DNA of 64,000 nucleotides, taken from NCBI GenBank assembly GCA_950097015.1, contig CATNEN010000009.1, positions 1,054,001-1,118,000 on the forward strand. The letters are read 5' to 3'. The first letter of the stretch is position 1. Each line of letters begins with the position of its first letter. This document shows positions 1-63,185 of the stretch, piece after piece. The notes beneath the pieces are model-generated. The model did not search any database. It was not told the origin of the DNA and saw only the letters and a program-made list of their open reading frames with translations. The stretch comes from Macrostomum hystrix. Its lineage: Eukaryota; Animalia; Platyhelminthes. Position numbers and translations under genes: made by a program.

Positions 1-702
1 AAGTGGCTCGGCGTGGAGTGCTTCGAGTCCGGACTGTTTAGCCACAAGTCGGATGTGTGGAGCTACGGAGTGCTTCTGTGGGAGATCTGCACCTTCGGCG
101 AGTCGCCCTACAACCCGTACGGAATTCGGTCGGTCGAGGACATCACAGGACTGCTGAAGAAGGGCATCCGACTGAACCAGCCCGACATCTGCAGCATCGA
201 CTTCTACAACATCCTGCTGAGCTGCTGGCTGCCTCAGCCGGAGTCTCGACCGAGCTTCCGCGACTTGGTGGACACAATGACCGAGTGCCTGAATATTCCG
301 TCCAAGTACATTGCCCAGGGCTACAGCATCGCTGATCCGGAGATGGGCACCGATGATGCCTTCGGCGATGTCAACGAGATGTCCCTGTCGTCGCTGGCGC
401 AAAAGAGCGGTGGCGACCGCAGGTTCGTTTGCAGTCACGACAAGCACGGCAAGGAGCTGAATGCGTATATCTCAGACCCGACCAGCCGCTACGCACCGCA
501 GCTGCGCCACCCTCCGGTGGGTCCAGTGAGTTCCAGCGACACCAGCGAGAGCTCCAAGCTGCTGTGCGGCCAGTTCAGTGTTCAGTCCGAGCCGGACGAC
601 TATCTGACCCCGACATCGCCGAGCGGCGTAAATGGAAGCAGCGATGCAGCTGAAGGTTCAAACGGCGTCTTGGATGACTACCTGACGCCGAAGAAGGCTT
701 GA
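1..702 (+). CDS. EGFR: EGFR-like receptor tyrosine kinase, type A, 3' part (kinase C-lobe and tail; runs off the left edge)
   Basis: Frame open from base 1 (KWLGVECF...SDVWSYGVLLWEI) to TGA at 702; near-identical to the 3' ends of 12420-15683 and 35921-39184, with the type A tail ending DDYLTPKKA. Confidence 0.93.
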   Translation, partial: KWLGVECFESGLFSHKSDVWSYGVLLWEICTFGESPYNPYGIRSVEDITGLLKKGIRLNQPDICSIDFYNILLSCWLPQPESRPSFRDLVDTMTECLNIPSKYIAQGYSIADPEMGTDDAFGDVNEMSLSSLAQKSGGDRRFVCSHDKHGKELNAYISDPTSRYAPQLRHPPVGPVSSSDTSESSKLLCGQFSVQSEPDDYLTPTSPSGVNGSSDAAEGSNGVLDDYLTPKKA

Positions 703-1364
703 GCCTCTGGACTCTCTGTTTCGTGAGTTTGAAGTTGCAGTGGCGTAAATGACTGATTTATTTGTAACACATTTATTTGCTGCATAGCTACCTAGGTTTC
801 ATTGGCTACCGGCCAGACAGATTCGGATATACTTTTGTTTTACTTACTCGATACGCTCGAAAATGGGAAGAATTCATCGCTAATACCCGATGTTGAATTG
901 AATTTTAACGTACAGTTTTTCTATAACACTGTGAGTATGGCAATAGCCCATGCAAGGGTCATCGCCGGAACTTCGTGATTCAGGCATGTTTGCTGTCAGC
1001 TGTCAGCTGAGTGGTAACTTCCCAACCTTTTCAGAAGAAATATCTCCCCTTGCCGTAGAGATTTCGCTTATGTATAATATACTACGCAATACCGAATCGA
1101 GTTTGTTAATCCTAATCCCTTTTTTCCTCGATCCAGGCGCTGTATAATGTACCAGAACTCATTTTTTTAATCTAAGGACTTTGTACGCTACATTCGCTTA
1201 CATTAAAGCAGTACTTTAATCACTTTCTCTTGAGTTGCCATTTGAGCAGTAATGTTTGTATAAATGCAAAAATTTGTATTTGTATAAATGTTTGTATAAA
1301 ATAAAATAAGCATTTTATTATTTGTGTCTCACACTCGGCCGAAAAAATAAACAATGCGTGCCGT

Positions 1365-2434
1365 ACACTCATGAATGCTGACTTCAGGGCTAGGACACTC
1401 ATGAATGCTGACTTCAGGGCTAGGACACTCATGAATGCTGACTTCAGGGCTAGGACACTCATGAATGCTGACTTCAGGGCCAGGACACTCATGAATGCTG
1501 ACTTCAGGGCTAGGACACTCATGAATGCTGACTTCAGGGCTAGGACACTCATGAATGCTGACTTCAGGGCTAGGACACTCATGAATGCTGACTTCAGGGC
1601 TAGGACACTCATGAATGCTGACTTCAGGGCCAGGACACTCATGAATGCTGACTTCAGGGCCAGGACACTCATGAATGCTGACTTCAGGGCCAGGACACTC
1701 ATGAATGCTGACTTCAGGGCTAGGACACTCATGAATGCTGACTTCAGGGCTAGGACACTCATGAATGCTGACTTCAGGACTAGGACACTCATGAATGCTG
1801 ACTTCAGGGCTAGGACACTCATGAATGCTGACTTCAGGGCTAGGACACTCATGAATGCTGACTTCAGGGCTAGGACACTCATGAATGCTGACTTCAGGGC
1901 TAGGACACTCATGAATGCTGACTTCAGGGCCAGGACACTCATGAATGCTGACTTCAGGGCCAGGACACTCATGAATGCTGACTTCAGGGCCAGGACACTC
2001 ATGAATGCTGACTTCAGGGCTAGGACACTCATGAATGCTGACTTCAGGGCCAGGACACTCATGAATGCTGACTTCAGGGCTAGGACACTCATGAATGCTG
2101 ACTTCAGGGCCAGGACACTCATGAATGCTGACTTCAGGGCCAGGACACTCATGAATGCTGACTTCAGGGCTAGGACACTCATGAATGCTGACTTCAGGGC
2201 TAGGACACTCATGAATGCTGACTTCAGGGTCAGGACACTCATGAATGCTGACTTCAGGGCTAGGACACTCATGAATGCTGACTTCAGGGCCAGGACACTC
2301 ATGAATGCTGACTTTAGGTTCAGGACACTCATGAATGTTGACTTCAGGTTCAGGACACTCATGAATGCTGACTTCAGGGCTAGGACACTCATGAATGCTG
2401 ACTTCAGGGCCAGGACACTCATGAATGCTGACTT
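1365..2434. repeat. 30-bp minisatellite (ACACTCATGAATGCTGACTTCAGGGCYAGG), ~36 copies
   Basis: Exact 30-bp periodicity; same array at 17761 and 42457. Confidence 0.97.
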
Positions 2435-2780
2435 ACTTCAGGTTTAGGAAAGTGAAGAGTAGGACTAACACATTTACCAAGGAATAATTGGTTAATACAA
2501 TACTGTAAATAGTACTAGCAGTAGTAGAATAGTCTGTTGCTTGTTTAATTGGTGGCCCAAGAAAGTGGCCAACAAAACCATGCTTTTTGATCAACATAGA
2601 ACAAGAATTTGAATATCATTTCACTGCAGAGAACTTTAAATTAAAATATGAAAGAAGACAACAGCATCAATGACAGACTGACTCAACAGGAGTGCAAATA
2701 ACAGGATCTAGCAAGTCCGAGTTCTTGAAGTTTGAGCTCTCAGAGCCTCACGAGCCGCTGCGTTTCCGTGGCCGCCCGAC

Positions 2781-2834
2781 TCACTCGATCGGTGGCAGCA
2801 GCTTCGCCAGGAACTGCTTCATGTCCGCCATCTC
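2781..2834 (-). pseudogene. Orphan copy of the LYPLA terminal exon (EMADMKQFLAKLLPPIE*), with 3' flank and part of the last intron
   Basis: Identical to exon 44173-44226 with CAG acceptor kept; upstream exons absent because the intron repeat runs into the type B upstream region. Confidence 0.85.
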
Positions 2835-2861
2835 CTGTGGTGCGAGCAACAAGAATTGGTG

Positions 2862-4255
2862 ACTGCAGCCACTGTCACATCAGACACTGCACCCACTGCC
2901 ACACCTGACACTGCAGCCACTGTCACATCAGACACTGCACCCACTGCCACATCAGACACTGCACCCACTGCCACATCAGACACTGCACCCACTGCCACAT
3001 CAGACACTGCAGCCACTGCCACATCAGACACTGCACCCACTGCCACACCTGACACTGCAGCCACTGTCACATCAGACACTGCACCCACTGCCACATCAGA
3101 CACTGCACCCACTGCCACATCAGACACTGCAGCCACTGCCACATCAGACACTGCACCCACTGCCACATCAGACACTGCACCCACTGCCACATCAGACACT
3201 GCACCCACTGCCACATCAGACACTGCAGCCACTGCCACATCAGACACTGCACCCACTGCCACATCAGACACTGCACCCACTGCCACATCAGACACTGCAC
3301 CCACTACCACACCTGACACTGCAGCCACTGTGACATCAGACACCCTGCCTTCACCCACTGCCACATCAGACACCCTGCCTTCACCCACTGCCACATCAGA
3401 CACTGCACCCACTGTGACATCAGACACCCTGACTTCACCCACTGCCACATCAGACACTGCAGCCACTGCCACATCAGACACTGCACCCACTGCCACATCA
3501 GACACTGCACCCACTGCCACATCAGACACTGCACCCACTGCCACATCAGACACTGCACCCACTGCCACATCAGACACTGCACCCACTGCCACATCAGACA
3601 CTGCACCCACTGCCACATCAGACACTGCACCCACTGCCACACCTGACACTGCAGCCACTGTCACATCAGACACTGCACCCACTGCCACATCAGACACTGC
3701 ACCCACTGCCACATCAGACACTGCAGCCACTGCCACATCAGACACTGCACCCACTGCCACATCAGACACTGCACCCACTGCCACATCAGACACTGCAGCC
3801 ACTGCCACATCAGACACTGCACCCACTGCCACATCAGACACTGCACCCACTGCCACATCAGACACTGCAGCCACTGCCACATCAGACACTGCACCCACTG
3901 CCACATCAGACACTGCAGCCACTGCCACATCAGACACTGCAGCCACTGCCACATCAGACACTGCACCCACTGCCACATCAGACACTGCACCCACTGCCAC
4001 ATCAGACACTGCACCCACTGCCACACCTGACACTGCAGCCACTGTCACATCAGACACTGCACCCACTGCCACATCAGACACTGCAGCCACTGCCACATCA
4101 GACACTGCACCCACTGCCACACCTGACACTGCAGCCACTGTCACATCAGACACTGCACCCACTGCCACATCAGACACTGCAGCCACTGTGACATCAGACA
4201 CCCTGCCTTCACCCACTGTCACACCAGACACTGCAGCCACTGCCACATCAGACAC
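2862..4255. repeat. 24-bp minisatellite (GCCACATCAGACACTGCACCCACT and variants), ~58 copies; duplicated LYPLA intron
   Basis: 24-bp periodicity; homologous to 44254-45681. Confidence 0.95.
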
Positions 4256-4586
4256 CACATCCCACACAGTCAGGACCATTCAATTGACATCCCACACAGT
4301 CAGGACCATTCAATTGGAATCCCACACAGTCAAGACGATCCAATTGACATCCCACACAGTCAGGACCATTCAATTGGCATCCCACACAGTCAAGACGATC
4401 CAATTGACATCCCACACAGTCAAGACCATTCAATTGGCATCCCACACGGTCAAGACCATTCAATTGGCATCCCACACAGTCAAGACGATTCAATTGACAT
4501 CTCACACAGTCAGGACCATTCAATTGACATCCCACACAGTCAAGACCATTCAATTGACATCTCACACGGTCGGGACCTATCATTTG
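4256..4586. repeat. Second 30-bp minisatellite (ACATCCCACACAGTCAGGACCATTCAATTG), ~11 copies
   Basis: 30-bp periodicity, directly abutting the 24-bp array. Confidence 0.92.
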
Positions 4587-4994
4587 CCACCCCATGCACG
4601 CAGTTATAATCAGTCAGTCTCACACCGACTGCATAAATCTACTTGACTTTTGCTCTACAGAAAGTACAACCGCGAGGGCTCCGAGAGTGCGCTATTCACG
4701 CAGCCAATGAGAGCCCAGAACCAACAGCAGCCAGTAAAGCAACAGAATTTTGGCGTTATTGGGCTGCAACTCGACCCGCCTCTCCCAGTGGATTCGCTCT
4801 GCTTGTGAAGAAAGGCATTTAAGCGCTCTCCTCGATACAAGCGTAGAAGAGAAGAACGTTACCAGAATTTCATTTCTGAATCTGGGCGTCAAAGATTCAC
4901 TTCTAAGAGACTTTCGCAACACAGACAGGAGCAGCAACAATCTTCTGACTGAAGAAAGTTACTCAGCACGATAGCCTTCAGGTGTCAACTTTCG

Positions 4995-7466
4995 ATGACA
5001 ACCAGAATGCTCAAGCTGCTGATTCTGCAGCTCCTCACAGCGCTTGCATCTTGCAGACAGCCACTGGGCTCCGACAGTCGCCGGTGCACCACCATCATCA
5101 TCAGTGACGGTCAGTACCAGAGCCACCGCAACGTCACGCGGCTGAATGAGGAGCTCAAAGCTAAAGTGGCCGGGTGCCAGTACGTGATCGGCGACCTTGT
5201 CCTCGAGAAAATCGGGGTCGATCAAGATTCATATGAACCCATCGACGAAGTCCGCAAACTTCGGACGGACTTTCTCGACTCCATCGTCGAGATCAGCGGA
5301 CGGTTGATCATCAAGTATGTCAACCTGGAGCGCATCACCTTGCGCAACCTGCGCATCATTCGCGGCTACAACATCCAGAATGAGGTCGATTTCTTCGCAA
5401 TGGAAATCTGGGAGTTGAGATACCCAACCCGACTGGAGCTGCCCAAGCTGAGCGCCATCCTGCAAGGCAGCGTCAAAACTGTCGGAACATTGCATGCGGA
5501 CCTGTACTGCCATTTGACTCGCAGCGTGAACTGGACGAGTCTATTCAACATATCGTCACAAATATTCCATGGAAACTCGTACGAAATGGCTTTCGGCAAA
5601 CAGCTGATAAGAGTCAATCAGTTCGATGAGATCGAGAGGGCCTGCAGTTCAGTACTGAATTGCAGTAGCAGCTGCCACACTGAAAGGTCTGGTCGACAGC
5701 TCTGCTGGTCCGACGGGCAAGACGGCTGCCAGAGCTTCAACGGATGTCTCAAGCGACAGTGCCGAAATGCTGCCTGCGACCCTCAGTGCAGAGACGAGTG
5801 CTGGGGACCCGGACCGGACATGTGCGTGGCCTGCAGGAACTTCGAGGTGGACGGTCGCTGTCATGCCACGTGCAAGCATGCAGGCCGATATCAGCTAGGC
5901 TCCTCGTGTCTGCCGTGCCACAGTGAGTGCGAAGGCGGCTGCAGCGGTCCGAGCGCTTCCGAGTGCGAGCGATGCCGAAAACTGAAGGAGGACGACAAGT
6001 GCGTGGCCTCCTGCAGTCGAGAAATGCGCGCGAGCTCAAAGGGCGTCTGCTACTCGGTGGCGACAGCGAGGCTCTTTGCTGTCGGCATCGGTGTCGGCCT
6101 GCTGATTCTGCTGCTGCTGCTGCTGCTGCCGCTCGCCTACCTGCACTACCGCAAGCGAATGCGAAAGTACGAGATGGTCGACCTGGACGAGTACCTGAAG
6201 GATCCGAGCAATCCGAGCGACATGGCGAAGCTGCTGATTGTGAACGACGACGATGTGGTGAAGCAGAAGGAGATCGGCAGCGGCGCGTTCTGCACCGTGT
6301 ACAAGGGCATTCTGAGGTCCAGCACAAACAAGGGTGTGCGCGAGCTGCCTGTGGCCATCAAGGTGTTGCGCGGTCACAGTCCGAAGCTGGGACAGGAGCT
6401 GCTGAATGAGGCGAGTGTCCTGGCCAGAGTGCAGCATCCGTGCTGCATCCGGCTGGTGGCTCTGTGCCTGACCCAGGAGCCGCAGCTGATCACGGCGCTG
6501 ATGCCTCGAGGCTGTCTGCTGGAGTTCCTGCGAACTCACCACAACCAAATCGGAGCGGAGCGAATGCTGCGTTGGGGCCTGCAGGTGGCAGAGGGCATGG
6601 AGTACCTGGAGTCTCTCGGCATTGTACACCGCGACCTGGCTGCTCGCAACGTGCTGCTTCAGTCTCCGGATCAGGTCCGCATCACGGACTTCGGTCTGGC
6701 TCGCCTGCTGAACCTGTCGGAGGGCGAGTTCGTCCAGACTGCGGGCCTCCTTCCAGTGAAGTGGCTCGGCGTGGAGTGCTTCGAGTCCGGACTGTTCAGC
6801 CACAAGTCGGATGTGTGGAGCTACGGAGTGCTTCTGTGGGAGATCTGCACCTTCGGCGAGTCGCCCTACAACCCGTACGGAATTCGGTCGGTCGAGGACA
6901 TCACAGGACTGCTGAAGAAGGGCATCCGACTGAACCAGCCCGACATCTGCAGCATCGACTTCTACAACATCCTGCTGAGCTGCTGGCTGCCTCAGCCGGA
7001 GTCTCGACCGAGCTTCCGCGACTTGGTGGACACAATGACCGAGTGCCTGAATATTCCGTCCAAGTACATTGCCCAGGGCTACAGCATCGCTGATCCGGAG
7101 ATGGGCACCGATGATGCCTTCGGCGATGTCAACGAGATGTCCCTGTCGTCGCTGGCGCAAAAGAGCGGTGGCGACCGCAGGTTCATTTGCAGTCACGACA
7201 AGCACGGCAAGGAGCTGAACAAATACATTTCGTATCCCAGCCGCAGCTATTCGAAGAAGCATCAGCACTCTCCTGAGCGTCGGAGTTCCAGCAAGGCCAG
7301 CGAAAGCTCCAAGCTGCTGTGCCGTCGAGTCGGCGTTCAGTCCGAGCCGGACGACTATCTGACTCCAACATCGCAGAGCGGCGTTAATGGAAGCAGCGAA
7401 GGCGCTGATGCAGACAACGGAGCGTCGAGGGACTTGGATGACTACCTGACACCGAAGAAGGTCTGA
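4995..7466 (+). CDS. EGFR: EGFR-like RTK, type B (823 aa): signal peptide, L1, fused Cys-rich region, TM, kinase, tail; lacks domain III
   Basis: Intronless ORF; L-domain motif IVEISGRLIIKYVNLERITLRNLRIIRG; furin-like Cys repeats; TM LFAVGIGVGLLILLLLLLLPLAYL; VAIK, HRDLAARN and DFG intact; Gly loop reads GSGAFC in this copy. Confidence 0.93.
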   Translation: MTTRMLKLLILQLLTALASCRQPLGSDSRRCTTIIISDGQYQSHRNVTRLNEELKAKVAGCQYVIGDLVLEKIGVDQDSYEPIDEVRKLRTDFLDSIVEISGRLIIKYVNLERITLRNLRIIRGYNIQNEVDFFAMEIWELRYPTRLELPKLSAILQGSVKTVGTLHADLYCHLTRSVNWTSLFNISSQIFHGNSYEMAFGKQLIRVNQFDEIERACSSVLNCSSSCHTERSGRQLCWSDGQDGCQSFNGCLKRQCRNAACDPQCRDECWGPGPDMCVACRNFEVDGRCHATCKHAGRYQLGSSCLPCHSECEGGCSGPSASECERCRKLKEDDKCVASCSREMRASSKGVCYSVATARLFAVGIGVGLLILLLLLLLPLAYLHYRKRMRKYEMVDLDEYLKDPSNPSDMAKLLIVNDDDVVKQKEIGSGAFCTVYKGILRSSTNKGVRELPVAIKVLRGHSPKLGQELLNEASVLARVQHPCCIRLVALCLTQEPQLITALMPRGCLLEFLRTHHNQIGAERMLRWGLQVAEGMEYLESLGIVHRDLAARNVLLQSPDQVRITDFGLARLLNLSEGEFVQTAGLLPVKWLGVECFESGLFSHKSDVWSYGVLLWEICTFGESPYNPYGIRSVEDITGLLKKGIRLNQPDICSIDFYNILLSCWLPQPESRPSFRDLVDTMTECLNIPSKYIAQGYSIADPEMGTDDAFGDVNEMSLSSLAQKSGGDRRFICSHDKHGKELNKYISYPSRSYSKKHQHSPERRSSSKASESSKLLCRRVGVQSEPDDYLTPTSQSGVNGSSEGADADNGASRDLDDYLTPKKV

Positions 7467-10452
7467 GTCATTCGGCTAATAATCCCATAGCTCTGTGCTG
7501 CATTGAGTGACGATTTGATAATCGATTATCGATTCAATTATCGAGAGATTCGTTTCCTAAATTTTATCGTTTCGGACTAATGGCATTAGAGACGGAGAGA
7601 GCGAAACCTATGGCATGAGTGAAATGAAAGAGAAATGAAAAAGAACAATGTTATGCAATCCAACATCTTGAGTATGCTGAGCGGTCGTGTGTGGTTTGCA
7701 TGAATTTTATTCAGATTTAGTCAGCTGAAATCAAGTCGTATTAACCAGCAGCCTGCTACTTTACACAAGTCACGCCATTGTCATGCTTAAGTGTGCAGTG
7801 TTTGGGTGTGGTCGAATGAAGTAATTTATCCTTGGGTAACTACCCGACAGGACTACCAACCGTAACACCTCTTAGACTTTAACATTTAGCCTTCACCTTT
7901 AATCTTTAAACTTAACGAGTAGTTCTGAAATTATATCCAAGAAACTCATAAAACACTGTCACACTATCCTAGCCTCGAATGCCAGACACCATGATATTAT
8001 TTTGTTATTGTTGACAGCGCTCAGCTGATTTTCGACTACTGCTCGATCTGTCCTGTGGTTCATTACAATGCAAGGCCTTCAATGCGAATTGAGATGTACT
8101 TTTAATCTGTGAAAACTAATCAGTGCTTACTCAGAATGCTTTGTTACTCAGTTCAGCCACAGCCACAGCCACAGCCACAGCCACAGTAGATTTGGCACTC
8201 CAGCATGTGTTTCTGACCTTTCGAAGTTATTGTTTCTAAACGCTTCTTAGTGTATCCCAGGTGATCAATTTGATGCTTCTAAATGTTATTTTCATGAATC
8301 CTAGCTTTCGGTTTGAAGTGTTTGGGATCGCACATTTAAAATTAACGACTAGAAGGTCGTGTCTGTCGGTGTGTCGACGCGTGCTTGCTTAATAAACGAG
8401 TGGCGTTTTTGTCAGCTTCGCTGGCGTCTATAATGGAAGGCCGAGAAATCGCTATCAACCGCAGGTGTTGCCTAAATTGCTGAGTCATGCTAGTCTTCAA
8501 CTAGAATACTGATCTTTAGATCTCCTTGATACACTAGGATATAAAAAAGTGAAAACCTCGTGGGCGGACGCAGTGAATCGTTAGTATCCTTAGCCAATGA
8601 TTGTGTTTATCTTATTCAGCATCCGGTGTTCACCAAAATATGCAATGCGCCCGCCAGTATGGACACAAGTCGATTCAATAAACACTATGGCTCGAGCTGT
8701 CAGGTATGGGCTATTTGTGAATAATTGGCACGAATAAATCTCAGTTGTGGCAGAGCGAAAAAAGCTACAGAGAGAACAGACTATTTTCTATTACTTTTTA
8801 TAATGCGGAGCTCGTGATGTTTCGTTCTCTGAGCCCGCCGTTTTCGCAGTTTGGCTGAAAGTTTGTTGAGTGCGTATGCGACAGACGGAAATGGCAGAGG
8901 AAGCCAGCGTGTCCAAGCTTGTTGGATAAACATCGATTAATTAAAAATAGCATTTTAGCGGCCTGCACGTCAAATGCAGCGGGATTTGAGAATTCGAATG
9001 CGTCTTCTACAAGCCCAGTCCTGCAGCCCATGTTTGTAGCTTAGACCTGTGGCTAAAAACTGAGTACGAGTGTAAACAATAGCTGGGCTTTTTTTGACAT
9101 TGCCGCCACGGTGCAAACGGAAACATAGCCTATTATTAGCCTGGCAGTTTTAGTGTTTATGTAAATAATTTCGATAAAAATAGAATATTTGACTTGACCG
9201 CCAGATCGCCAACCACTGAAACAGCTGCAACAATATTGTTCATTATCTGCCTATTAAACTAGACATTTGCATTTTTGTTGTCTTACTAATGGTTGGTTGT
9301 GAGGCCATCTCGGGATATTCAAGAGAATTGCGCAGCATGCCGCAGGTCGCGAGCCACTCGATCCCTGTCTCGCCAGTAAGGTGCACTAGCTCACGATTGT
9401 TCACATTGAGGTCGCATAGCTTGATGGCAGGTCTCAAAAGATTCGGCACAACAATGAAACGGGCTGCTTGAGGTCGGCGGCAATTGTAAGCTGAAAAAAG
9501 ACGGAAACATATTAAACGCGGCAAATTAAAATATTGCCCCATTAGATTACTTAGGCCAGGTTCTCCAAACCCAGGGTCAGGCTACCTTTTTAAGACTAAG
9601 AATCCTCAGGTGCATCATGGCTCTTTCCGCCCTGGTTGAGTGGAACAGACCTGCAGTAGTACTGTACTTGCTGGTCACGGGTCCAACGGCTCCAACACCC
9701 GAGCTAAAAGTCCGTGGCCTTGTCGTATGTTGCGCGTTGGGCGGTCACCGTTCCATCAAACCTCTAGTCACACCTGATGGTGAGCATGATGCTGTGGACT
9801 GGCCGCAGAGTTTCACAAAGCGCAGAGACAATTAAAGTTACCTGAGCCTCAGTTCATCCACTTCATCATGTCGCCCTGGGAATCCATTCGTCAGCGATGA
9901 GGGATGCTGCACTGGGCAGCTCCTGCCGTGACCTACTTCAGAGAGCAAAGTTGAAGCATCGCAAACCGAATCTGTTTCTATTCACAGGTCCCGCGAGTGC
10001 TGTAAAGATCCTCGATCACTTTGAACACTGATTTACTATTCTGTTGTTGACTTTCATCTCGATGTCGTGGCAGCGAGCAGCAGCAAAATTAGCTTTGTAG
10101 GCAATTCATGGGAAACAATAAGCAATAATTGGTACTAAATTATTGCTTATTATTGCTTCAAAATCTTCATATTTCTTAAAGCCAGATGTAGCCATCCTAC
10201 TTGCAACATCATTGACATATAACCAAGTGTGCGTAAACGTCTCAAGCTCGTGTATAGTTTATGGCCCAAAGGCCATCAAAGAAATAGATTGAAGTGTGCA
10301 GTAAATTCCGCAACTGTGCGGTAAATGATACTCCACTTGATCTCCGTGCCATCCCTCTTCTGAGCTACTATGCAGTAAATCCCAGACGGGTATTGTCTAT
10401 GGGCCGAAGGAGCTGGTCTTGCGCACACACACTTGGTCATAAATCAATGCAC

Positions 10453-10548
10453 TTATGCTAGGCTTCCTAGTGCGTAAATAGTCTATGGCACTCGCGCGCT
10501 GCGCGCACTCGTGCAAAGACTATTTACGCACTCGGAAGCCTAGCATAA
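10453..10548. mobile_element. Small hairpin or MITE-like element with 32-bp inverted arms
   Basis: TTATGCTAGGCTTCCTAGTGCGTAAATAGTCT and AGACTATTTACGCACTCGGAAGCCTAGCATAA pair at 31/32 positions; TA at both ends. Confidence 0.55.
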
Positions 10549-10666
10549 ATCTACCATTGAAAACACAAGAAGACATTGTTTACGGTAGGCCTTTTGGGAT
10601 GGCATAGAAAAACGAAGTCAAAATAATATAATTGCGCTTTTCGCGTTTCTTGCACTACTAAGCAAA

Positions 10667-11022
10667 GGTGGCAGAGTGGTAAACGCGTTTGCCTCTCGCA
10701 CCACGGTCCCTAAGTTCGATTCCACGGCGAGGCCGCATTCATTTGGGGCGCAGCCGCGGAGAGAAGGCTTGGGGCTTGTCGTGCGATAACGCCCTTGAGG
10801 GCCAATCTCCAAGGCACAGTGAAATGTGCACTGCCTGACGATGAGAAAGTCAGGGCAGATGTACTCACCTGTGTGAGCACATGCTGGCGTACAGTATCTG
10901 TGTGCGTGTGTGCTCAGGAGTCAGCGAAATGGGCAGAATTGCCTCCTCGCTGGCAGCGGGTCTAGTGTCACTAAATGATGTGCCATTACCTGCAGCCCTC
11001 CTGCAATTATTATTATTATTAT
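10667..11022 (+). mobile_element. tRNA-derived SINE, family 2
   Basis: A-box-like TGGCAGAGTGG, B-box-like GTTCGATTCC, (TTA)n tail; copy at 28036 and diverged copy at ~55945. Confidence 0.7.
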
Positions 11023-11061
11023 TTAAGCAAAGATACATTATTCGGTGCCTTGCGCCATTAC

Positions 11062-11296
11062 TGATTGTGCATTCTACTGACATGTAAGAAGTAGGGTGTC
11101 ACAAACATTGATTGTGCATTCTACTGACATGTAAGAAGTAGGGTGTCACAAACATTGATTGTGCATTCCACTGACATGTAAGAAGTAGGGTGTCACAAAC
11201 ATTGATTGTGCATTCTACTGACATGTAAGAAGTAGGGTGTCACAAACATTGATTGTGCATTCTACTGACATGTAAGAAGTAGGGTGTCACAAACAT
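11062..11296. repeat. 47-bp tandem repeat, 5 copies
   Basis: TGATTGTGCATTCTACTGACATGTAAGAAGTAGGGTGTCACAAACAT periodicity. Confidence 0.92.
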
Positions 11297-11763
11297 TTTT
11301 GGCTGTTTTAATATTTGTGAATCCACCAAAAAATGTAAAAAAGTAAGAAGCAGCCAGGGTGGCCGGAAGTAGAGTTAGAGAGGCCAGATGCTGTGAAGAC
11401 TGCCATGCGCAGGCTCAGTAGATGGCGAGTGAAAAAAGGCCATCGAAAGACTTCCTGTCACGCCAGCAGTTGTTCTTGTTATTAGCATTACGTGGGGTGC
11501 AAAAATAAAAGCCTTTGAGGCTCAGATCTGAACAGCTGACCCGGCAGAGACCAAAGGGTGATGGCCTGCGGCGTCTGTGCTGAACTGCCTGACATCAGCA
11601 GGCCTGATGTGCATCTGAAACATTTTTGGCGCTTGCCTCACGGCCTGCGGTTCTGTCTTGCGTCATCATCCGCTGATCTGCTGCTTTCGACTTCTAGAGA
11701 GTCGGATAAATAATTCCACTTTGGCTTCCAACAGGCCACTTACTGTATATTTTTATACTTTAT

Positions 11764-17699: not shown

Positions 17700-17760
17700 A
17701 AAGAAGCATTTTATTATTTGTGTCTCACACTCGGCCGAAAAAATAAACAATGCGTGCCGT

Positions 17761-19859: not shown

Positions 19860-19886
19860 CTGTGGTGCGAGCAACAAGAATTGGTG

Positions 19887-28035: not shown

Positions 28036-28392
28036 GGTGGCAGAGTGGTAAACGCGTTTGCCTCTCGCACCACGGTCCCTAAGTTCGATTCCACGGCGAG
28101 GCCGCATTCATTTGGGGCGCAGCCGCGGAGAGAAGGCTTGGGGCTTGTCGTGCGATAACGCCCTTGAGGGCCAATCTCCAAGGCACAGTGAAATGTGCAC
28201 TGCCTGACGATGAGAAAGTCAGGGCAGATGTACTCACCTGTGTGAGCATATGCTGGCGTACAGTATCTGTGTGCGTGTGTGTTCAGGAGTCAGCGAAATG
28301 GGCAGAATTGCCTCCTCGCTGGCAGCGGGTCTAGTGTCACTAAATGATGTGCCATTACCGGCAGCCCTCCTGCAATTATTATTATTATTATT
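28036..28392 (+). mobile_element. tRNA-derived SINE, family 2 (duplicate of 10667-11022)
   Basis: Near-identical sequence with A/B boxes and TTA tail. Confidence 0.7.
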
Positions 28393-31227: not shown

Positions 31228-33487
31228 TCACTTCAGGTAGATGAGGAAGCGGTCAGCGAACTTGGCGCCGCCAGATTGCAGCGCGCTGGCCTGACTCTCC
31301 GTGTACACCAGCGCTGGCGCCTTTCCGCGCCAGCCGTTGTAGCCCCAGGCGCAGGGGTCGCGCGCGTCTGACACGGTCCAGAAGGCCCTGTCGCCTCCAC
31401 AGCCGGCGTATGAGAACAGGATGAAGAAGCCGCGCTTCCAGTGCGTGTCGCCAGCGATTGAGAATTTCTGGAACCTTGGATCGGCCACGCTTGGGTTGTG
31501 GTAGAACCCGTCAGAGTGCTTCAGTTCGCGGACTGCACGGTAGGGAAAGCTGGACACCACGCGGCTCTGGTGGAACCAGTTCTGCTTGTCCAGTCCCTGC
31601 CTTCTGATGGAGACGTCGAACACGACCTGGGCGACTTTGCGGTTGGCGACTCGCATCTCCGCCACCAGGTACTGCCGGCCACTGGCGATCACAGCCTGGC
31701 TGAGGTTGTCGATCAAGTCCGATCGGTAGACTTCGGGTAGAGATCCTGTGCTTGCCTTGGAGAATGCGGGCTGCCTGTTCAGGAAGGTGGCCACGGCTTG
31801 ATGACCGGAGCCCGCCTTCACAGTGAACAGAATAATCTTGTCGTTCTCTGCGGGCGGGTACATGTATTTGACGCTTTTGCACTTATAAAATATATTCGAG
31901 TCGATTAAGTAAGTACAGCACTAGCAGAGTTTTGCATGGATCTGCATGTGAAGTTGCATTCGTTGAATCCACAAAACATGATTCGATTGAAAGGCCAAAA
32001 AATCATCGAAAAGTTCGTCCTAAAAAGCAACATTTGCTGAATCGAGAATTGAGAATACTCCCAAAAGCATGATGATCTTGGCAGAATAGATTTCGAAATG
32101 AGTAGAGTTTTTGAACCCTCACACCGGCCATCTCACCGAACGTGAAGGCTCCAGGTAAGGCCTTTCTGGACACAGCAAACGGCGGGAGCACAGGCGTCTC
32201 AAGGCGCAGGTAGACGAGGAAGCGATCAGCAAAGGCTGTGTTGCCCTCGTGGTAGGGCTTGCTGTCCACTTTGCTGTATACCAGAAGAGGTGACTTTCCC
32301 TTCCAGCCGCGGTTGCTGTAGGTGCAGGGGTCCCTCACATCGGAGACGTAGAACAGCCCAGTGTCCTTCTCGCAGCCTCCGTAGTGACGGTTGATTTGAA
32401 ATCGGCGCAAAAGGCTCGCACCACGGTTATCTCCGTCGATGCCAAAGATGTTATAGTTGCTGCGGCCGAACCAGAAAGGCTTTGTGGACAGCAGCCTCTT
32501 GGGGCTGAACCAGCTGTTCTTGTCCAAGCCCTCCGGCTCGGCGCTGAACACCGCCTGCGAAACTGTGCGACCAGCTTCGTCGCGCATCTCAGCAACGATC
32601 TGCCATCGGCCGCCTTTGGCCACCCGTGCGAGCTGGTCGAGGAGGCCTGACCGGTAGAGGGTGGGCAGGGAGCCGTCCCTCGGCACTGCGTAGGTTTGCT
32701 CGCTCTGAAAAGTTGGGTAGACCTGGTGACCGCTGTTGGCCTTCACAGTGTAGAGCAGCAGCTTGTCGGACTCTGCAGAGGCGTGATTTCGAGTTCTTAG
32801 GAAACAATGCGGTATCTGAGAACACAGTAAAATGGTGATGAACTTCATGTGAAAGCCGAACTTACCGAACCAGAAGGCGTTCCTGAAGGGTCGCTTGACA
32901 GCATTGGCCACCGGAAGGCCGACGCGGCTCAGTTCAAAGCTCTGGCCGTTAGCCTTGCCGTGGAAGGTGAATCTCAGAGAGCCTAGCAGCTCAGCATGGT
33001 CCGGACCGGTGAAGCGCAAGGCGCGCTTGAGTCGGAGACAGGCGGCGCGGCTCCGGCAGCGGAAGGTGACTACGGGATGGCGACCTCGGTTCCAGCGTCC
33101 TGAAACCGTCACCGAGGGGCAGCTGCTGGCACAAGCACCTGTAATGGACTTGCGAATAGTCACCTTGAAGCTCTGCACCTGCAACAGCTCCCACTTGCGG
33201 GTGCCGTCGGCTGGCAGCTTCACTCCGGACTCAACGACAAGGGGCACCGTCATGAAGAACCCCTGGCCCAGCGGGTCCGGCCGGATGTCCACGCCCCTGC
33301 GCGGCAACCGCATGGCGATGTAGGGCTCCACGACGCGAACTTCGTTGTTAGCGAAGCAGCGCAGCCGAGCGCCACGGAACATCAGCGCGGGAGCCTCCTC
33401 CCAACTCCCAGGCTGCTGCTCCGACAGGCCACCCTGAGCGGACGGTGTCGTCAGCAGCAGAATGCTCAGGCTGAAGAAATAGAACAT
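31228..33487 (-). CDS. Secreted protein, ~625 aa, 3 exons (33487-32866, 32772-32137, 31847-31228), two tandem homologous domains of unknown family
   Basis: Signal peptide MFYFFSLSILLLTTPSAQG; phase-1 introns GTAAG...CTGCAG (93 nt) and GTGAG...CCGCAG (289 nt); spliced CDS 1878 nt stays in frame; exons 2 and 3 align (YGGCEKDTG/YAGCGGDRA, DVRDPC/DARDPC, FADRFLVYL/FADRFLIYL). Confidence 0.78.
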
Positions 33488-34102
33488 TGCGGCACTCTTG
33501 TTTGAATAATATTTTAGACCGAATCAGAAAAGATAGTTGAACGCAAAAATGGCAATGGCTCTCGCATTCTTATACACAATTCTTATGCACCTAGGCAGCT
33601 GCTAGGAGGAGAGCTGAGAGCTCTGAAATGGCTGCGTTTGCAGCATATGGTGAGCGAAGCCACCGCGGAGGCGAGACCGGAGGTATGAGGGCCTGGATCA
33701 ACAGCTGCAATTCGAGTCAGGGGACCACCACCTCGCGCCGCCCTCACCTGACAAACTCTTCAGCCACGAAGCTGCCTGCCAGGGTCATCTCTGTCTTCAA
33801 CTTTCAAACCGCTCTGCGCCTCGAGTTCGACCTGCGTGAGCAAGTGCCAGGCTGAGTTGCTGCTCCTGAGACTTGAGCAGCCTAATCCAAGAGAATGCTC
33901 AGTGGCTGCAGTTTGCCAACAACTTGACGGACAGAAGGGAATCTTTACTGAGAAGCTATTCTGTTCGCTATTGACTCTTTGCGATTAAACTTCTGTGACT
34001 TGAGTCGACAGCTTTTTTCTTTATTTTCCAGGCTGAAATTGTTTCGCGTGTCAAGTGCTTGACTCTGTCATTTAGTAGCCATTCGGTGCCTTGCGCCATT
34101 AC

Positions 34103-34337
34103 TGATTGTGCATTCTACTGACATGTAAGAAGTAGGGTGTCACAAACATTGATTGTGCATTCTACTGACATGTAAGAAGTAGGGTGTCACAAACATTGAT
34201 TGTGCATTCCACTGACATGTAAGAAGTAGGGTGTCACAAACATTGATTGTGCATTCTACTGACATGTAAGAAGTAGGGTGTCACAAACATTGATTGTGCA
34301 TTCTACTGACATGTAAGAAGTAGGGTGTCACAAACAT
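34103..34337. repeat. 47-bp tandem repeat, 5 copies
   Basis: Duplicate of 11062-11296. Confidence 0.92.
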
Positions 34338-34804
34338 TTTTGGCTGTTTTGGTATTTGTGAATCCACCAAAAAATGTAAAAAAGTAAGAAGCAGCCAGGG
34401 TGGCCGGAAGTAGAGTTAGAGAGGCCAGATGCTGTGAAGACTGCCATGCGCAGGCTCAGTAGATGGCGAGTGAAAAAAGGCCATCGAAAGACTTCCTGTC
34501 ACGCCAGCAGTTGTTCTTGTTATTAGCATTACGTGGGGTGCAAAAATAAAAGCATTTGAGGCTCAGATCTGAACAGCTGACCCGGCAGAGTCCAAAGGGT
34601 GATGGCCTGCGGCGTCTGTGCTGAACTGCCTGACATCAGCAGGCCTGATGTGCATCTGAAACATTTTTGGCGCTTGCCTCACGGCCTGCGGTTCTGTCTT
34701 GCGTCATCATCCGCTGATCTGCTGCTTTCGACTTCTAGAGAGTCGGATAAATAATTCCACTTTGGCTTCCAACAGGCCACTTACTGTATATTTTTATACT
34801 TTAT

Positions 34805-34997
34805 CCATGGACTGGGTGGGACGCCACACCCGCCCTCCAATACCCTGAAGTTACTGGTCCTACCCATTTAATAGCTGCGTGAACTGAACCAACAAAGAGC
34901 TAATTGTCTTGCTAAAGAACAAAAATGATTTTGCGCATTCGGGAATCGAACCTTCGATCTTCAAGTGGTGATGGCAACGCTCTAACCACTAGGCTAC
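34805..34997 (-). mobile_element. tRNA-derived SINE, family 1 (duplicate of 11764-11956)
   Basis: Near-identical sequence. Confidence 0.65.
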
Positions 34998-35920
34998 AAT
35001 CGCTACCTTTTTGATACAAAAATGATTAAATTTCCAGATGTGTAAATATCATGCTTCCATTCCAACTGATGTTTACATGGAGCAAGCTTAGGTGTGAAAT
35101 AACTTCGGGAATAATATCTACGCAGTGCAAGGTAACTAGTCTCCACTGGCAAAGTTTTCGAATGCGAGGCAAAATTCTAGGTCCAGATAAATGCAACGAA
35201 TACGATATGCGCGGTTATTTTCGAATAGCAAATTTATAACTTATGGGCATGGCCATCCACTTGTGAAAAATAAGCTGTGCAACAATGAGGCCATTCGGCC
35301 GCCTAATTTGGCCAAATGGCGGGCGCTCTCATTGAATGTGCGCACACAAATGAGGCGGCACACAGTGGCCCGCCGCTCAGCACGCACACAAGTTATCTGG
35401 GGGCGCGCTCTGCCGTGAGTACGCTAGTGGCGGTGAGCCATTAAGTCAGCCGGCCCAGCCAATTGGGTACGGGCAAACCCTGCCCCCTACTGGCTCATTG
35501 TGCGTAATAACTGATAAGCCCGCAGCGGAGGTGAAGACTGGGAGGCCTCTTATTTCCTGTAGCAAAATCCAACCTGGTGTTGTCAAAACTTGCACACAGT
35601 GCAACAGCCGCTCCACACAGCCAAGATCTGAATCTCCTATTGGCGCAAACTCACAAAGCACCTAATCGAAAGGCTATATTTAAGATCGCCCTCGGACTAG
35701 AAGAGCTTGGAGGAAAACGCTCTGGCCTTTCAAACTGTCACAGAGCCGTTGCCCAACTTCACTTCCAAATTCGGGCCTCGCCGTGAGTGCGCAACTGTGG
35801 GCTGATTAGATAAAGCCGTGAATTCACTTTCAAAAGTCTGCGGAAAATCGCAGAGCAGAAACTGCTATCTCCACAATTCTCGCTGACAGGTGCAGGAAAG
35901 AGGAAAACTGCGCAATTTCA

Positions 35921-38900
35921 ATGCGTTCGACAACTACTACTATGCTTGAGCTGCTGCTTCTGCAACTGCTCGCAAGCCTCGGCTCCAGCAGCCAGCCACT
36001 GGGCTCCAACAGTCGCCTGTGCAAGACCATCACCATCACGAACGGACTGTACCAGACCCACCGGAACATCAGCCGACTGCACGCAGAACTCAGCGCCACG
36101 GTGGCCGGATGCCAGTATTTGAACGGCGATCTCAATATCTTGAATGTCGGCGCTGATCCGACATCCGAGCAGCCTCTCGACGACGCTATCCGTGGACTTG
36201 AGACAGACTTTCTCGACTCCATCGTTGAGATCAGCGGGCGGTTGGTCATTAAACGTGTCAACTTGAAGCGACTCACCTTGCGCAACCTGCGGTCTATACG
36301 CGGCTACAATCACGAGAATGTGAGTCCATTCTACTCAATGGAAGTCTGGCAGACGAGATACCCCACCCAACTGGAGCTGCCCAAGCTGAGCGCCATCCTG
36401 CAAGGCAGTGTCAACATGATTGGCACAGTGCATGCGGACCTGTACTGCCATTTGACTCGCAGCGTACACTGGCTGAGTCTGTTTCAAAACCCAGCGCTGC
36501 AAAAATTCATCGATGATGCCTCCCTCATGGCTCTCGGCGACCAACTAATAAGAGTCGATAAGTTCGATGAGATCGAGAGGGCCTGCAGTTCAGTACTGAA
36601 TTGCAGTAGCAGCTGCCACACTGAAATGTCTGGTCGACAGCTCTGCTGGTCCGACGGGCAAGACGGCTGCCAGAGCTTCAACGGATGTCTCGAGCGACCG
36701 TGCCTAAATTGCTACCGACATCCCCAAACACGCACCGAGGAGTGTTGCAACACCGACTGTCTCGGCGGCTGCTCCGACCGGCCTGATGGCTGTTTCTCCT
36801 GTCGCGATGTCATTCTGCATGGGGTTTGCAAGGGCGCGTGTCCACTCAAGTCGGACCCGAACCCTGGCACAAATAGGGTCGACAGTTTCAACTCCAGCAT
36901 GAAGCGGGTGGGCCACATCTGTGTGAACAAGTGCGAGATGCCGTTTGTGACGAGCTCCAACGAAGAGCACTGCTTGAGCGAGTGTCCTCAGACTGAGTAT
37001 CCGTACCAAGGTGTCTGCAAAAAATGCACCCTGTCGTCTTGCAAGTCATGCACGATCACAAAGCTAATCCTGAATGACGATGAGGCACAGAAGCTCAAGG
37101 ACAGAAACTGCACGACCTGGCGAACGGACGCCTCCTTGGAAGTCAGCGGCGACAAGCTGAGCAGCAAGGCCAGTCTGATGACACTGGAATCACTACAAAT
37201 ATTTTATGGTCGCTTGTTTATCAAGAGAAGCGAAGGCCTGGTACAAAATCTAGGAATTCTCAAGAATTTAAAGTTCGTGTCGGACAACTTTGGAATTACG
37301 TTTTTAAAGACAACCTACATTGGTCTCGCCAAGCTCAGATACGCAAAGTCTCTCTTGTTTATGAGGGTGAGCGGTCTGTGCAAGGCTTGGTACCCCAGCA
37401 ACAGAATTCATGAAATCATGGAGGTCACCAAGGAGTTTCCGATATCCATCAGAGACATCAGCTTCGACAACTCGAGCGAAGTGTGCCGAAATGCTGCCTG
37501 CGACCCTCAGTGCAGAGACGAGTGCTGGGGACCCGGACCGGACATGTGCGTGGCCTGCAGGAACTTCGAGGTGGACGGTCGCTGTCATGCCACGTGCAAG
37601 CATGCAGGCCGATATCAGCTAGGCTCCTCGTGTCTGCCGTGCCACAGTGAGTGCGACGGCGGCTGCAGCGGTCCGAGCGCTTCCGAGTGCGAGCGATGCC
37701 GAAAACTGAAGGAGGACGACAAGTGCGTGGCCTCCTGCAGTCGAGAAATGCGCGCGAGCTCAAAGGGCGTCTGCTACTCGGTGGCGACAGCGAGGCTCTT
37801 TGCTGTCGGCATCGGTGTCGGCCTGCTGATTCTGCTGCTGCTGCTGCTGCTGCCGCTCGCCTACCTGCACTACCGCAAGCGAATGCGAAAGTACGAGATG
37901 GTCGACCTGGACGAGTACCTGAAGGATCCGAGCAATCCGAGCGACATGGCGAAGCTGCTGATTGTGAACGACGACGATGTGGTGAAGCAGAAGGAGATCG
38001 GCAGCGGCGCGTTCGGCACCGTGTACAAGGGCATTCTGAGGTCCAGCACAAACAAGGGAGTGCGCGAGCTGCCTGTGGCCATCAAGGTGTTGCGTGGTCA
38101 CAGTCCGAAGCTGGGACAGGAGCTGCTGAATGAGGCGAGTGTCCTGGCCAGAGTGCAGCATCCGTGCTGCATCCGGCTGGTGGCTCTGTTCCTGACCCAG
38201 GAGCCGCAGCTGATCACGGCGCTGATGCCTCGAGGCTGTCTGCTGGAGTTCCTGCGAACTCACCACAACCAAATCGGAGCGGAGCGAATGCTGCGTTGGG
38301 GCCTGCAGGTGGCAGAGGGCATGGAGTACCTGGAGTCTCTCGGCATTGTCCACCGCGACCTGGCTGCTCGAAACGTGCTGCTTCAGTCTCCGGATCAGGT
38401 CCGCATCACGGACTTCGGTCTGGCTCGCCTGCTGAACCTGTCGGAGGGCGAGTTCGTCCAGACTGCGGGCCTCCTGCCAGTGAAGTGGCTCGGCGTGGAG
38501 TGCTTCGAGTCCGGACTGTTTAGCCACAAGTCGGATGTGTGGAGCTACGGAGTGCTTCTGTGGGAGATCTGCACCTTCGGCGAGTCGCCCTACAACCCGT
38601 ACGGAATTCGGTCGGTCGAGGACATCACAGGGCTGCTGAAGAAGGGCATCCGACTGAACCAGCCCGACATCTGCAGCATCGACTTCTACAACATCCTGCT
38701 GAGCTGCTGGCTGCCTCAGCCGGAGTCTCGACCGAGCTTCCGCGACTTGGTGGACACAATGACCGAGTGCCTGAATATTCCGTCCAAGTACATTGCCCAG
38801 GGCTACAGCATCGCTGATCCGGAGATGGGCACCGATGATGCCTTCGGCGATGTCAACGAGATGTCCCTGTCGTCGCTGGCGCAAAAGAGCGGTGGCGACC

Positions 38901-39184
38901 GCAGGTTCGTTTGCAGTCACGACAAGCACGGCTTGGAGCTGAATGCGTATATCTCAGACCCGACCAGCCGCTACGCACCGCAGCTGCGCCACCCTCCGGT
39001 GGGTCCAGTGAGTTCCAGCGACACCAGCGAGAGCTCCAAGCTGCTGTGCGGCCAGTTCAGTGTTCAGTCCGAGCCGGACGACTATCTGACCCCGACATCG
39101 CCGAGCGGCGTAAATGGAAGCAGCGATGCAGCTGAAGGTTCAAACGGCGTCTTGGATGACTACCTGACGCCGAAGAAGGCTTGA
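35921..39184 (+). CDS. EGFR: EGFR-like RTK, type A (1087 aa)
   Basis: Intronless ORF; about 11 residues differ from 12420-15683; all motifs intact. Confidence 0.95.
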   Translation: MRSTTTTMLELLLLQLLASLGSSSQPLGSNSRLCKTITITNGLYQTHRNISRLHAELSATVAGCQYLNGDLNILNVGADPTSEQPLDDAIRGLETDFLDSIVEISGRLVIKRVNLKRLTLRNLRSIRGYNHENVSPFYSMEVWQTRYPTQLELPKLSAILQGSVNMIGTVHADLYCHLTRSVHWLSLFQNPALQKFIDDASLMALGDQLIRVDKFDEIERACSSVLNCSSSCHTEMSGRQLCWSDGQDGCQSFNGCLERPCLNCYRHPQTRTEECCNTDCLGGCSDRPDGCFSCRDVILHGVCKGACPLKSDPNPGTNRVDSFNSSMKRVGHICVNKCEMPFVTSSNEEHCLSECPQTEYPYQGVCKKCTLSSCKSCTITKLILNDDEAQKLKDRNCTTWRTDASLEVSGDKLSSKASLMTLESLQIFYGRLFIKRSEGLVQNLGILKNLKFVSDNFGITFLKTTYIGLAKLRYAKSLLFMRVSGLCKAWYPSNRIHEIMEVTKEFPISIRDISFDNSSEVCRNAACDPQCRDECWGPGPDMCVACRNFEVDGRCHATCKHAGRYQLGSSCLPCHSECDGGCSGPSASECERCRKLKEDDKCVASCSREMRASSKGVCYSVATARLFAVGIGVGLLILLLLLLLPLAYLHYRKRMRKYEMVDLDEYLKDPSNPSDMAKLLIVNDDDVVKQKEIGSGAFGTVYKGILRSSTNKGVRELPVAIKVLRGHSPKLGQELLNEASVLARVQHPCCIRLVALFLTQEPQLITALMPRGCLLEFLRTHHNQIGAERMLRWGLQVAEGMEYLESLGIVHRDLAARNVLLQSPDQVRITDFGLARLLNLSEGEFVQTAGLLPVKWLGVECFESGLFSHKSDVWSYGVLLWEICTFGESPYNPYGIRSVEDITGLLKKGIRLNQPDICSIDFYNILLSCWLPQPESRPSFRDLVDTMTECLNIPSKYIAQGYSIADPEMGTDDAFGDVNEMSLSSLAQKSGGDRRFVCSHDKHGLELNAYISDPTSRYAPQLRHPPVGPVSSSDTSESSKLLCGQFSVQSEPDDYLTPTSPSGVNGSSDAAEGSNGVLDDYLTPKKA

Positions 39185-49998: not shown

Positions 49999-50014
49999 GA
50001 TTTTTCAAACGCTG

Positions 50015-63168: not shown

Positions 63169-63185
63169 AGTATATTGGCATGGAG

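Follow-up and report, generated by a model that had tools for sequence, protein, structure and literature searches.

Probable gene conversion of a shared signalling cassette among EGFR-type receptors with diverged ectodomains in Macrostomum hystrix

The window analysed here, a 64,000-nt stretch of the Macrostomum hystrix genome, carries five EGFR-type open reading frames on its plus strand, all of them intronless, in the order A (tail only), B, A, B, A. The first, A0 (positions 1..702), is represented by its 3′ end only, that is, the kinase C-lobe and the tail, its ORF starting 2561 nt before the window. It is followed by B1 (4995..7466), a type B gene of 823 aa with an internal deletion, in which a signal peptide, L1 (5076-5621) and the start of domain II run through a junction into domain IV (from 5760), the transmembrane (TM) segment (6072-6143), the kinase (6255-7073) and a type B tail. 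A1 (12420..15683) is a full-length type A gene of 1087 aa, with L1 at 12510-13061, domain IV from 13983, TM at 14295-14366 and the kinase at 14478-15296; its stretch at about 13200-13982 has no counterpart in B1 or B2. The second deletion copy of type B, B2 (22704..25175, 823 aa), and a second full-length type A gene, A2 (35921..39184, 1087 aa), complete the series. In the cluster as a whole, C lies on the minus strand and is followed by B0, A0, B1, A1, B2 and A2, where B0 is an intact type B gene ~17 kb upstream of the window and C is a third EGFR type, likewise upstream, placed head-to-head with the type A/B array.

While a first-pass annotation had read this alternation as A-B pairs, the repeat unit is instead B-X-A. 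Gene X (31231..33523, minus strand) comprises two ORFs, one of 506 codons whose start resembles a signal peptide and one of 230 codons in which the first one's C-terminal half recurs (37%); no family assignment was found, the ESM Atlas yielding no reliable match, and the gene is a passenger of the tandem unit. Unit 1 (B0, X, A0) extends from about -17450 to 4571 and is closed by 30-nt, 24-nt and 30-nt satellite arrays (1365..4571). Unit 2 (4572..22280) contains B1, A1 and satellites, gene X being gone with ~5.7 kb lost, and unit 3 (22281..45682) contains B2, gene X, A2 and satellites. The further unit-closing satellites, at 17761-22280 and 42457-45679, differ in copy number. A lysophospholipase-like exon (Abhydrolase_2; 45683..46285, minus strand) provides a synteny marker, this gene also following type A in Macrostomum lignano. 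Gene X, the lysophospholipase-like gene and the C24 EGFR were considered as separate pieces.

The unit flanks diverge by 0.2-0.6% among the three units, and by sequence the array appears to be a very recent triplication of one 18-23 kb B-X-A segment. Such small distances might also mean that the triplication is in part an assembly artefact, with haplotypes or copy-number alleles of pooled worms laid out in tandem and an alternation that does not exist on one chromosome; pooled worms do stand behind the assembly, for which haplotype purging was needed (PMC10468722). However, the three units are structurally distinct (B0 with X; a deletion B without X; a deletion B with X), their satellite lengths differ, and the sequenced worm line is strongly inbred, so that we regard such an artefact as unlikely. 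It would in any case leave untouched the mosaic of types A, B and C described below, which is confirmed by M. lignano.

Types A, B0 and C all display the EGFR/ErbB architecture of L1-CR1-L2-CR2, a single TM segment and a tyrosine kinase. A1 matches Recep_L, Furin-like, GF_recep_IV and PK_Tyr above the Pfam cut-offs; its L2 is recognised by alignment, with no second Pfam stretch. The best solved structures for the M. lignano type A ortholog are EGFR/ErbB2, and the ectodomain cysteine pattern (46 cysteines, as in the EGFR/ErbB family) aligns with fish ErbBs. The canonical catalytic motifs (GxGxxG, VAIK, alphaC Glu, HRDLAARN and DFG) are present with one exception: B1 alone has a Cys for the last Gly of the GxGxxG loop (6291..6293, plus strand), a mutation or a polishing error, while the other six copies keep the glycine. 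At the asymmetric-dimer interface, every residue that could be aligned is present, and no type differs from another there. M. lignano has 8 EGFRs and 2 ligands according to Barberan et al. 2016 (PMC4914847), and M. hystrix A is the ortholog of Mlig012838 within this Macrostomum expansion. Some 17 further ectodomain-only EGFR loci, listed by position, are found in the genome.

Comparison of types A and B by region gave an uneven picture, as the first-pass annotation had proposed. Between A1 and B1, nucleotide identity is 74.4% in L1 (62.6% at the amino acid level) and 74.4% in the last 82 codons (64.6%), versus 99.4% in domain IV, 98.4% in TM and juxtamembrane and 99.4% in the kinase; across A and B copies generally, domain IV to kinase is 98-100% identical. 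A0 and B0 share an identical run of up to 884 nt, well beyond chance, the maximum in 2000 permutations being 131. The near-identity had also been thought to run unbroken from the FDEIERAC motif to domain IV, which does not hold: B1 and B2 lack most of domain II and L2, and in the intact B0, L2 has diverged from A as far as L1 (76% nt), and the later part of domain II reaches 92%. The first part of domain II is converted as well (99%), while its later part, the dimer arm included, is 84-92% identical between A and B. Divergence therefore has two peaks, one on each ligand-binding domain, with converted domain II between them.

Protein conservation alone is excluded as the cause of the shared core, since synonymous sites are homogenised too: the A0/B0 synonymous distance is 0.003 in the core, against 0.64 in L1, 0.72 in L2, 0.71 in the tail end and 0.64 in the signal peptide. 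Across the six A/B copies, no position of the core sets the A copies apart from the B copies, and incompatibility affects 26 of the 55 site pairs, a count possibly inflated, as short-read polishing may mix variants of near-identical copies. Upstream and downstream flanks show no similarity between types, ruling out shared promoters or 3′ ends. In A1, the converted cassette occupies 13983..15431 (plus strand), comprising domain IV, TM, juxtamembrane, kinase and the first 45 tail residues; B shares it as far as 15431, and type C as far as 15296. GC3 within the tract is 0.80 in M. hystrix, versus 0.55-0.75, and 0.88 in M. lignano in core and L1 alike. The dN/dS of L1 and L2 (0.3-0.4) indicates constraint only.

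The same mosaic persists between A and C in two species. In both M. hystrix and M. lignano, A and C share 31-43% of ectodomain residues and 100% of the kinase and TM plus juxtamembrane, while in other Macrostomum EGFR paralogs whose ectodomains are just as far apart, the kinases are 73-79% identical. When A and C of the two species are set together, 43 core sites group by species and none by paralog, versus 5 by species and 97 by paralog outside the core (Fisher p 1e-31 vs core); trees likewise group the core by species and the ectodomain by paralog. Core dS is 0.003 for A/B, 0.08 for A/C and 0.47 between species. The A/C tract ends are identical in both species and lie at domain borders. M. 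hystrix and M. lignano differ by ~0.5-2 synonymous changes per site; a published divergence date for the pair was not found. For C of M. lignano, the protein was taken from UniRef gene models, for which no contig is on record, and the comparison was made at the protein level. A fused gene model, in which two runs of 324 and 219 residues upstream of A read as antisense C, points to a head-to-head order in M. lignano too, while on three M. lignano contigs with A, C was not within 10 kb. A free tree suggested that the C head had been grafted from another EGFR lineage; this reading was set aside, as A plus C as one clade was not rejected (AU p 0.062).

Paralogs closer than orthologs in one tract, with the reverse elsewhere, are thus seen for A/C in two species, on which the case rests, and the sequences indicate long-term gene conversion of the domain IV-TM-kinase cassette, as in TLR1/TLR6. 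The A/B pair, by comparison, appears young. The array locus of M. lignano carries one gene, of type A only, and trees place the A/B split after the split from M. lignano (support 99/98), which suggests that B was derived from A in the M. hystrix lineage.

For the cluster as a whole, we think it probable that a signalling cassette of about 1.3 kb, from domain IV through TM and juxtamembrane to the kinase, has been copied among A, B and C by repeated interlocus gene conversion, which L1, L2, the tail end and the flanks escape. Purifying selection would hold the cassette similar enough for conversion to continue, and the heads are probably kept distinct by selection, so that A, B and C may act as alternative input heads on one kinase. 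Nothing need be selected as such, however, if conversion just continues wherever identity stays high under purifying selection and has ended where indels and divergence accumulated. L1, L2, tail and signal peptide are indeed equally diverged, a 3-bp indel patch in C domain IV escaped conversion, and conversion is known to end at indels, which could stop it neutrally (PMC3924837). Against such a neutral origin, the tracts end at domain borders, the same ones in both species, and A/B divergence peaks on both ligand-binding domains, as expected around selected sites; we consider it possible but the less favoured account.

The closest parallel to this cluster is TLR1/TLR6, neighbouring immune-receptor paralogs undergoing gene conversion (Kruithof et al. 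2007, PMC2077338). There, too, paralogs resemble each other more than orthologs do in the ectodomain next to the membrane, the TM and the signalling domain, while the ligand-binding part diverges, and nearly the same tract is affected in each species; the converted paralogs are alternatives, each pairing with a third receptor. Unlike TLR1/TLR6, the Macrostomum genes encode a receptor tyrosine kinase, combine an inverted old pair with tandem young copies, and have three heads and ~450 converted aa. Long-lasting concerted evolution has also been described for BMP8A/B, DDX19A/B, TUBG1/2 and CCR2/CCR5 (PMC2720389), which are likewise mosaic pairs with conserved tract borders and diverged regulatory regions, one of them inverted; their tracts ignore protein domains, whereas those in Macrostomum follow them. 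Our literature search for gene conversion in EGFR or other RTKs found no report, and the part of the Macrostomum EGFR paper considered here (PMC4914847) describes no kinase shared by paralogs, conversion or L2-less form.

B1 and B2 depart from the other copies. Their 823 aa, compared with 1087 aa in A, leave 264 A residues without counterpart, which make up the whole of L2 and the greater part of domain II. Relative to the intact B0, from which B1 differs by ~1% (99% nt identity), 783 bp (261 aa) are deleted between 10-bp repeats; the microhomology lies at 5759..5768 (plus strand) in B1 and at 23468-23477 (plus strand) in B2, and B0 has it on both sides of the deleted part. An intron is no explanation, as GT..AG removal would not yield the observed junction. 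The deletion allele would have arisen from B0 by microhomology, very recently, and the segmental triplication would then have copied it. B1 and B2 have one L domain in place of the two of a canonical EGFR, lack the domain II dimer arm and, on sequence grounds, are EGFR-derived rather than canonical receptors; because L2 and the domain II arm are absent, they are predicted to be incapable of normal EGF-ligand binding.

Might they nonetheless be selected, ligand-independent receptors, in which L1 joined to domain IV has no tether partner and the two orphaned cysteines at the junction, five residues apart, bond with each other or bridge a dimer, which would leave the receptor constantly active at a low level or provide A with a ready activator kinase? 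The deletion is in-frame and leaves signal peptide, TM and kinase motifs intact, 26 cysteines remain after removal of 20, an even number, and the form is present twice. AlphaFold2 folds L1 and domain IV of B1 (5058-6062) well, with a mean pLDDT of 86.6 and only the junction below 50. There is a precedent in EGFRvIII and other tumour variants with in-frame ectodomain deletions in the amplified EGFR locus, where loss of ligand binding is likewise predicted, cysteines are orphaned, and EGFRvIII shows that weak constitutive activity is possible in an ectodomain-deleted form with a free cysteine (PMC7024087). However, what EGFRvIII loses is the opposite half: domains I-II are gone and III-IV remain, while B1 and B2 retain I and IV, with III missing entirely and II for the most part; unlike the tumour variant, they come from the germ-line assembly of a wild-type animal. 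At ~1% from B0 they are far too young for selection to be tested, a repeat-flanked deletion requires no selection, B1 has its private Gly-to-Cys change in the glycine loop, and a search of M. lignano did not find the form. A selected role is therefore improbable, and the likeliest reading of B1 and B2 is as copy-number passengers or as weak modifiers.

The first-pass annotation had seen in A and B a co-amplified receptor/co-receptor pair resembling EGFR/ErbB2. Its notion of a kinase kept interchangeable is borne out by the synonymous distances, about 0.003 in the core versus 0.6-0.7 in L1, L2 and tail, and any homo- or heterodimer would be structurally possible, none being obligatory on present evidence; interchangeable kinases do not, however, amount to an ErbB2-like partnership. 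ErbB2 is a ligand-less co-receptor whose full ectodomain exposes its dimer arm and whose kinase has a sequence of its own. B1 and B2 resemble it in that their kinase looks active and could in principle take part in asymmetric dimers, but they are armless, and B0, with its complete, ordinary ectodomain of 46 cysteines like A, shows no sign of being ligand-less. For an obligate pair, amplified because its members act together, speak the identical kinase and juxtamembrane, which would permit mixed asymmetric dimers, the converted first part of domain II (99%), the faster evolution of B (56 vs 35 derived residues, p 0.035) and the presence of one A and one B in every unit. Yet co-amplification is a by-product of the triplication of one segment, in which satellites and the unrelated gene X ride along; late domain II with the dimer arm is only 84-92% identical; and the M. 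lignano locus holds a single gene, A and B having split after the two species parted. The diverged ends give little backing to diverged inputs and docking outputs: L1 and tail diverge at the level of the signal peptide, that is, the unconverted background, and A and B tails have both DDYLTP motifs and N-x-Y-I-S-x-P in common, B adding one tyrosine, so that their docking outputs probably differ little. The C tail is clearly different. We thus consider an obligate A/B pair very improbable. The receptor/co-receptor idea fits the A/C pair, outside the stretch it was proposed for, better.

A still wider reading, to which we attach little credence, is that Macrostomum EGFRs form a variable-head, constant-kinase repertoire of three heads, kinase-less membrane-anchored decoys with fast-changing L2, the ~17 ectodomain-only genes and selected ligand-blind B1/B2. 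If true, this repertoire would far exceed the need of few EGF ligands, and the heads may read non-EGF ligands.

For alternative heads on a converted cassette, the cluster would show the TLR1/TLR6 pattern of diverging heads and a copied signalling module in a receptor tyrosine kinase as well, its tracts ending at domain borders in two species. As a practical consequence, kinase-based trees, probes, read counts and RNAi cannot distinguish A, B and C in Macrostomum. B1 and B2 offer a natural L1-plus-domain-IV receptor for asking what auto-inhibition needs of the ectodomain, while A, B and C are natural chimeras, joining the same kinase to different heads and tails in a tractable regeneration model, and may help to separate input specificity from output.

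The intronless EGFR frames of the window, all on the plus strand and with M. lignano EGFRs as their nearest protein relatives, alternate as the tail of A0 (1-702), B1 (4995-7466), A1 (12420-15683), B2 (22704-25175), and A2 (35921-39184). The genome searched was the M. hystrix assembly of 220,453,370 bases in 42 contigs (PMC10468722, Table 1). Between A1 and B1, DNA identity is 74% in both L1 and the last 82 codons, as against 98-99% across domain IV, the transmembrane segment (TM), juxtamembrane region, and kinase. The longest identical run of A0 and B0 is 884 nt, with at most 131 nt in permutations; this contrast lies far beyond chance, and the A/B mosaic reported by the first-pass annotation is therefore real, although that account had not stated that B1 and B2 lack most of domain II and the whole of L2.

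Between A0 and the intact B0, the core has a synonymous distance of 0.003 and domain II one of 0.14-0.2, while L1, L2, the signal peptide, and the tail end reach 0.61-0.72; judged from sequence, the high values date the duplication and the low ones indicate converted tracts. None of the core sites sorts the six A/B copies by type, and 26 site pairs out of 55 are incompatible with a single tree, a count that polishing may inflate. The heads are constrained, since dN/dS between A and B is 0.3-0.4 in L1 and L2, and B has evolved somewhat faster (56 derived residues versus 35 in A, p = 0.035). Both tails retain two DDYLTP motifs and an N-x-Y-I-S-x-P motif, the latter similar to the Cbl site of EGFR; B has one tyrosine more. 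No similarity between types A, B, and C was detectable in their upstream or downstream flanks. A short inverted repeat with a 16-nt unit lies 3′ of each A copy (16719-16929 and 40248-40400).

B1 and B2 comprise 823 residues compared with 1087 in A, and an intact B0 of 1084 aa lies 17 kb upstream of the window. Both match B0 at 99% identity but lack 783 bp (261 aa). In B0 the missing part is bordered at each end by the same 10-bp sequence; the B1/B2 junction retains a single copy, with an adjacent base changed, a pattern that we infer to be the footprint of a microhomology-mediated deletion. Twenty cysteines are lost and 26 kept; alignment with fish ErbBs, together with the EGFR disulfide map, suggests that two of these, five residues apart, lack their usual partners. 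AlphaFold2 modeled L1 and domain IV of B1 confidently (mean pLDDT 86.6), falling below 50 at ten junction residues only. Dimers form mainly through the hairpin of domain II, which also tethers to domain IV, and domain III is a major EGF-binding domain (PMC6523254), so the B1/B2 protein cannot follow the usual route of ligand binding and dimerisation. In B1 alone, cysteine replaces a glycine of the kinase's glycine loop (6291-6293), a change that may weaken this copy or be a polishing error. B1 and B2 are too young for selection to show and are read as a recent variant; that they make a functional ligand-blind receptor seems improbable. EGFRvIII differs in that its deletion is reciprocal to theirs (PMC7024087).

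Self-comparison over 114 kb resolved B0-X-A0, B1-A1, and B2-X-A2 as tandem units, all three with satellites at their end; the middle one has lost the passenger gene X. As their unique flanks differ by 0.2-0.6%, the A/B alternation reflects a single segmental triplication, or a copy-number variant, of very recent origin; assembly error might account for part of the array. Three M. lignano contigs carry a single A-type gene ahead of the same lysophospholipase gene, and in ectodomain trees hystrix A and B form a clade that leaves out the lignano gene (support 96/96 and 99/98), placing the A/B duplication in the hystrix lineage. One of the three lignano copies, on NIVC01000386.1, is frameshifted where domain IV starts, giving an annotated 549-aa ectodomain-only protein. 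Gene X (31231-33523, minus strand) has a signal-peptide-like start, an internal repeat, no Pfam family match, and a copy at 72-75% on M. hystrix contig C7; the ESM Atlas gave only weak leads (cnidarian unknowns, fibrinogen-C/COLFI-like at 0.82-0.86). Past the cluster, 46700-63200 holds at least eight unrelated satellite arrays (units of 18, 23, 23, 29, 33, 17, 26, and 37 nt).

An older pair involves type C, a single-copy, minus-strand gene situated 7.7 kb ahead of B0. Ectodomain identity between C and A is 31-43%, the same distance as for other EGFR paralogs, whereas TM, juxtamembrane region, and kinase are 100% identical; other Macrostomum EGFR paralogs with similarly distant ectodomains reach only 73-79% in the kinase. 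Orthologs of both A (P0001/P0021) and C (P0002/P0024) were found in M. lignano, with cores 99-100% identical to each other and bearing lignano-specific residues. Across the four proteins, informative core sites group 43 by species and 0 by paralog, compared with 5 and 97 outside the core (p = 1e-31). The core tree likewise clusters by species, and synonymous sites of the core give distances of 0.08 for hystrix A versus C and 0.47 between species. In both species the tract runs from the first residues of domain IV to the kinase end. A fused M. lignano gene model includes C, with its C-specific parts, antisense upstream of A; the head-to-head order is thus conserved. For the C head as sister to the A head, the AU test gave p = 0.062, which does not reject that grouping.

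Three intronless, A-derived genes on M. hystrix contig C3, L018 (4786386-4788308), L020 (4809413-4811506), and L023 (4448190-4450121), encode 640, 697, and 643 aa, all end just past the TM, and have no kinase remnant nearby; they would be membrane-anchored decoy-like receptors. In their L2, dN approximates or exceeds dS (0.22/0.18, 0.21/0.22), and one of the three has a duplicated domain IV module. No M. lignano counterpart was found. An intact-looking non-LTR retroelement frame of 1429 codons (L019) lies between two of them, and an LTR-retroelement gag-pol-like frame (L022) adjoins the third. A set of 17 open frames (575-624 codons each) on contigs C1 (24.5-27.4 Mb), C15, and C39, besides about four broken ones, matches the whole L1-CR1-L2 region at 35-38%, with no EGFR-kinase match adjacent among the matches listed; from their positions, these are probably a large ectodomain-only family. 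Kinase matches of 46-49% with L-domain matches upstream, on C38, C1, C25, and C29 (L035, L037, L039, and L036; open-frame lengths of 1350-1589 codons, or 723 at C29), suggest several intronless insulin-receptor-like genes.

The closest known system is TLR1/TLR6, where the converted stretch takes in the TIR domain, the TM, and the part of the ectodomain next to the membrane, and each receptor pairs with TLR2 (PMC2077338); CCR2/CCR5 and BMP8A/B are similar converted pairs (PMC2720389). An EGFR expansion in M. lignano is known (8 receptors and 2 ligands; PMC4914847), and no case of conversion among EGFRs or other RTKs turned up in the literature searched. Sequence comparison shows that the domain IV-TM-kinase cassette has been repeatedly converted among A, B, and C, for A/C lasting across a speciation. 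Constraint would keep the cassette similar enough for further conversion, while selection probably shields both ligand-binding domains, given that peaks of divergence in converting genes point to sites under selection (PMC3924837); a neutral stop of conversion at indels is a possible alternative. The outcome is several heads on one kinase. Kinase motifs and alignable asymmetric-dimer residues are retained, so every copy could be activator or receiver, which would permit heterodimers without requiring them. Of the receptor/co-receptor pair first proposed, the interchangeable kinase holds (98-100% core identity) but the A/B partnership is unsupported, and the EGFR/ErbB2-type comparison fails on features open to testing. 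The robust result is the cassette common to A and C across species.
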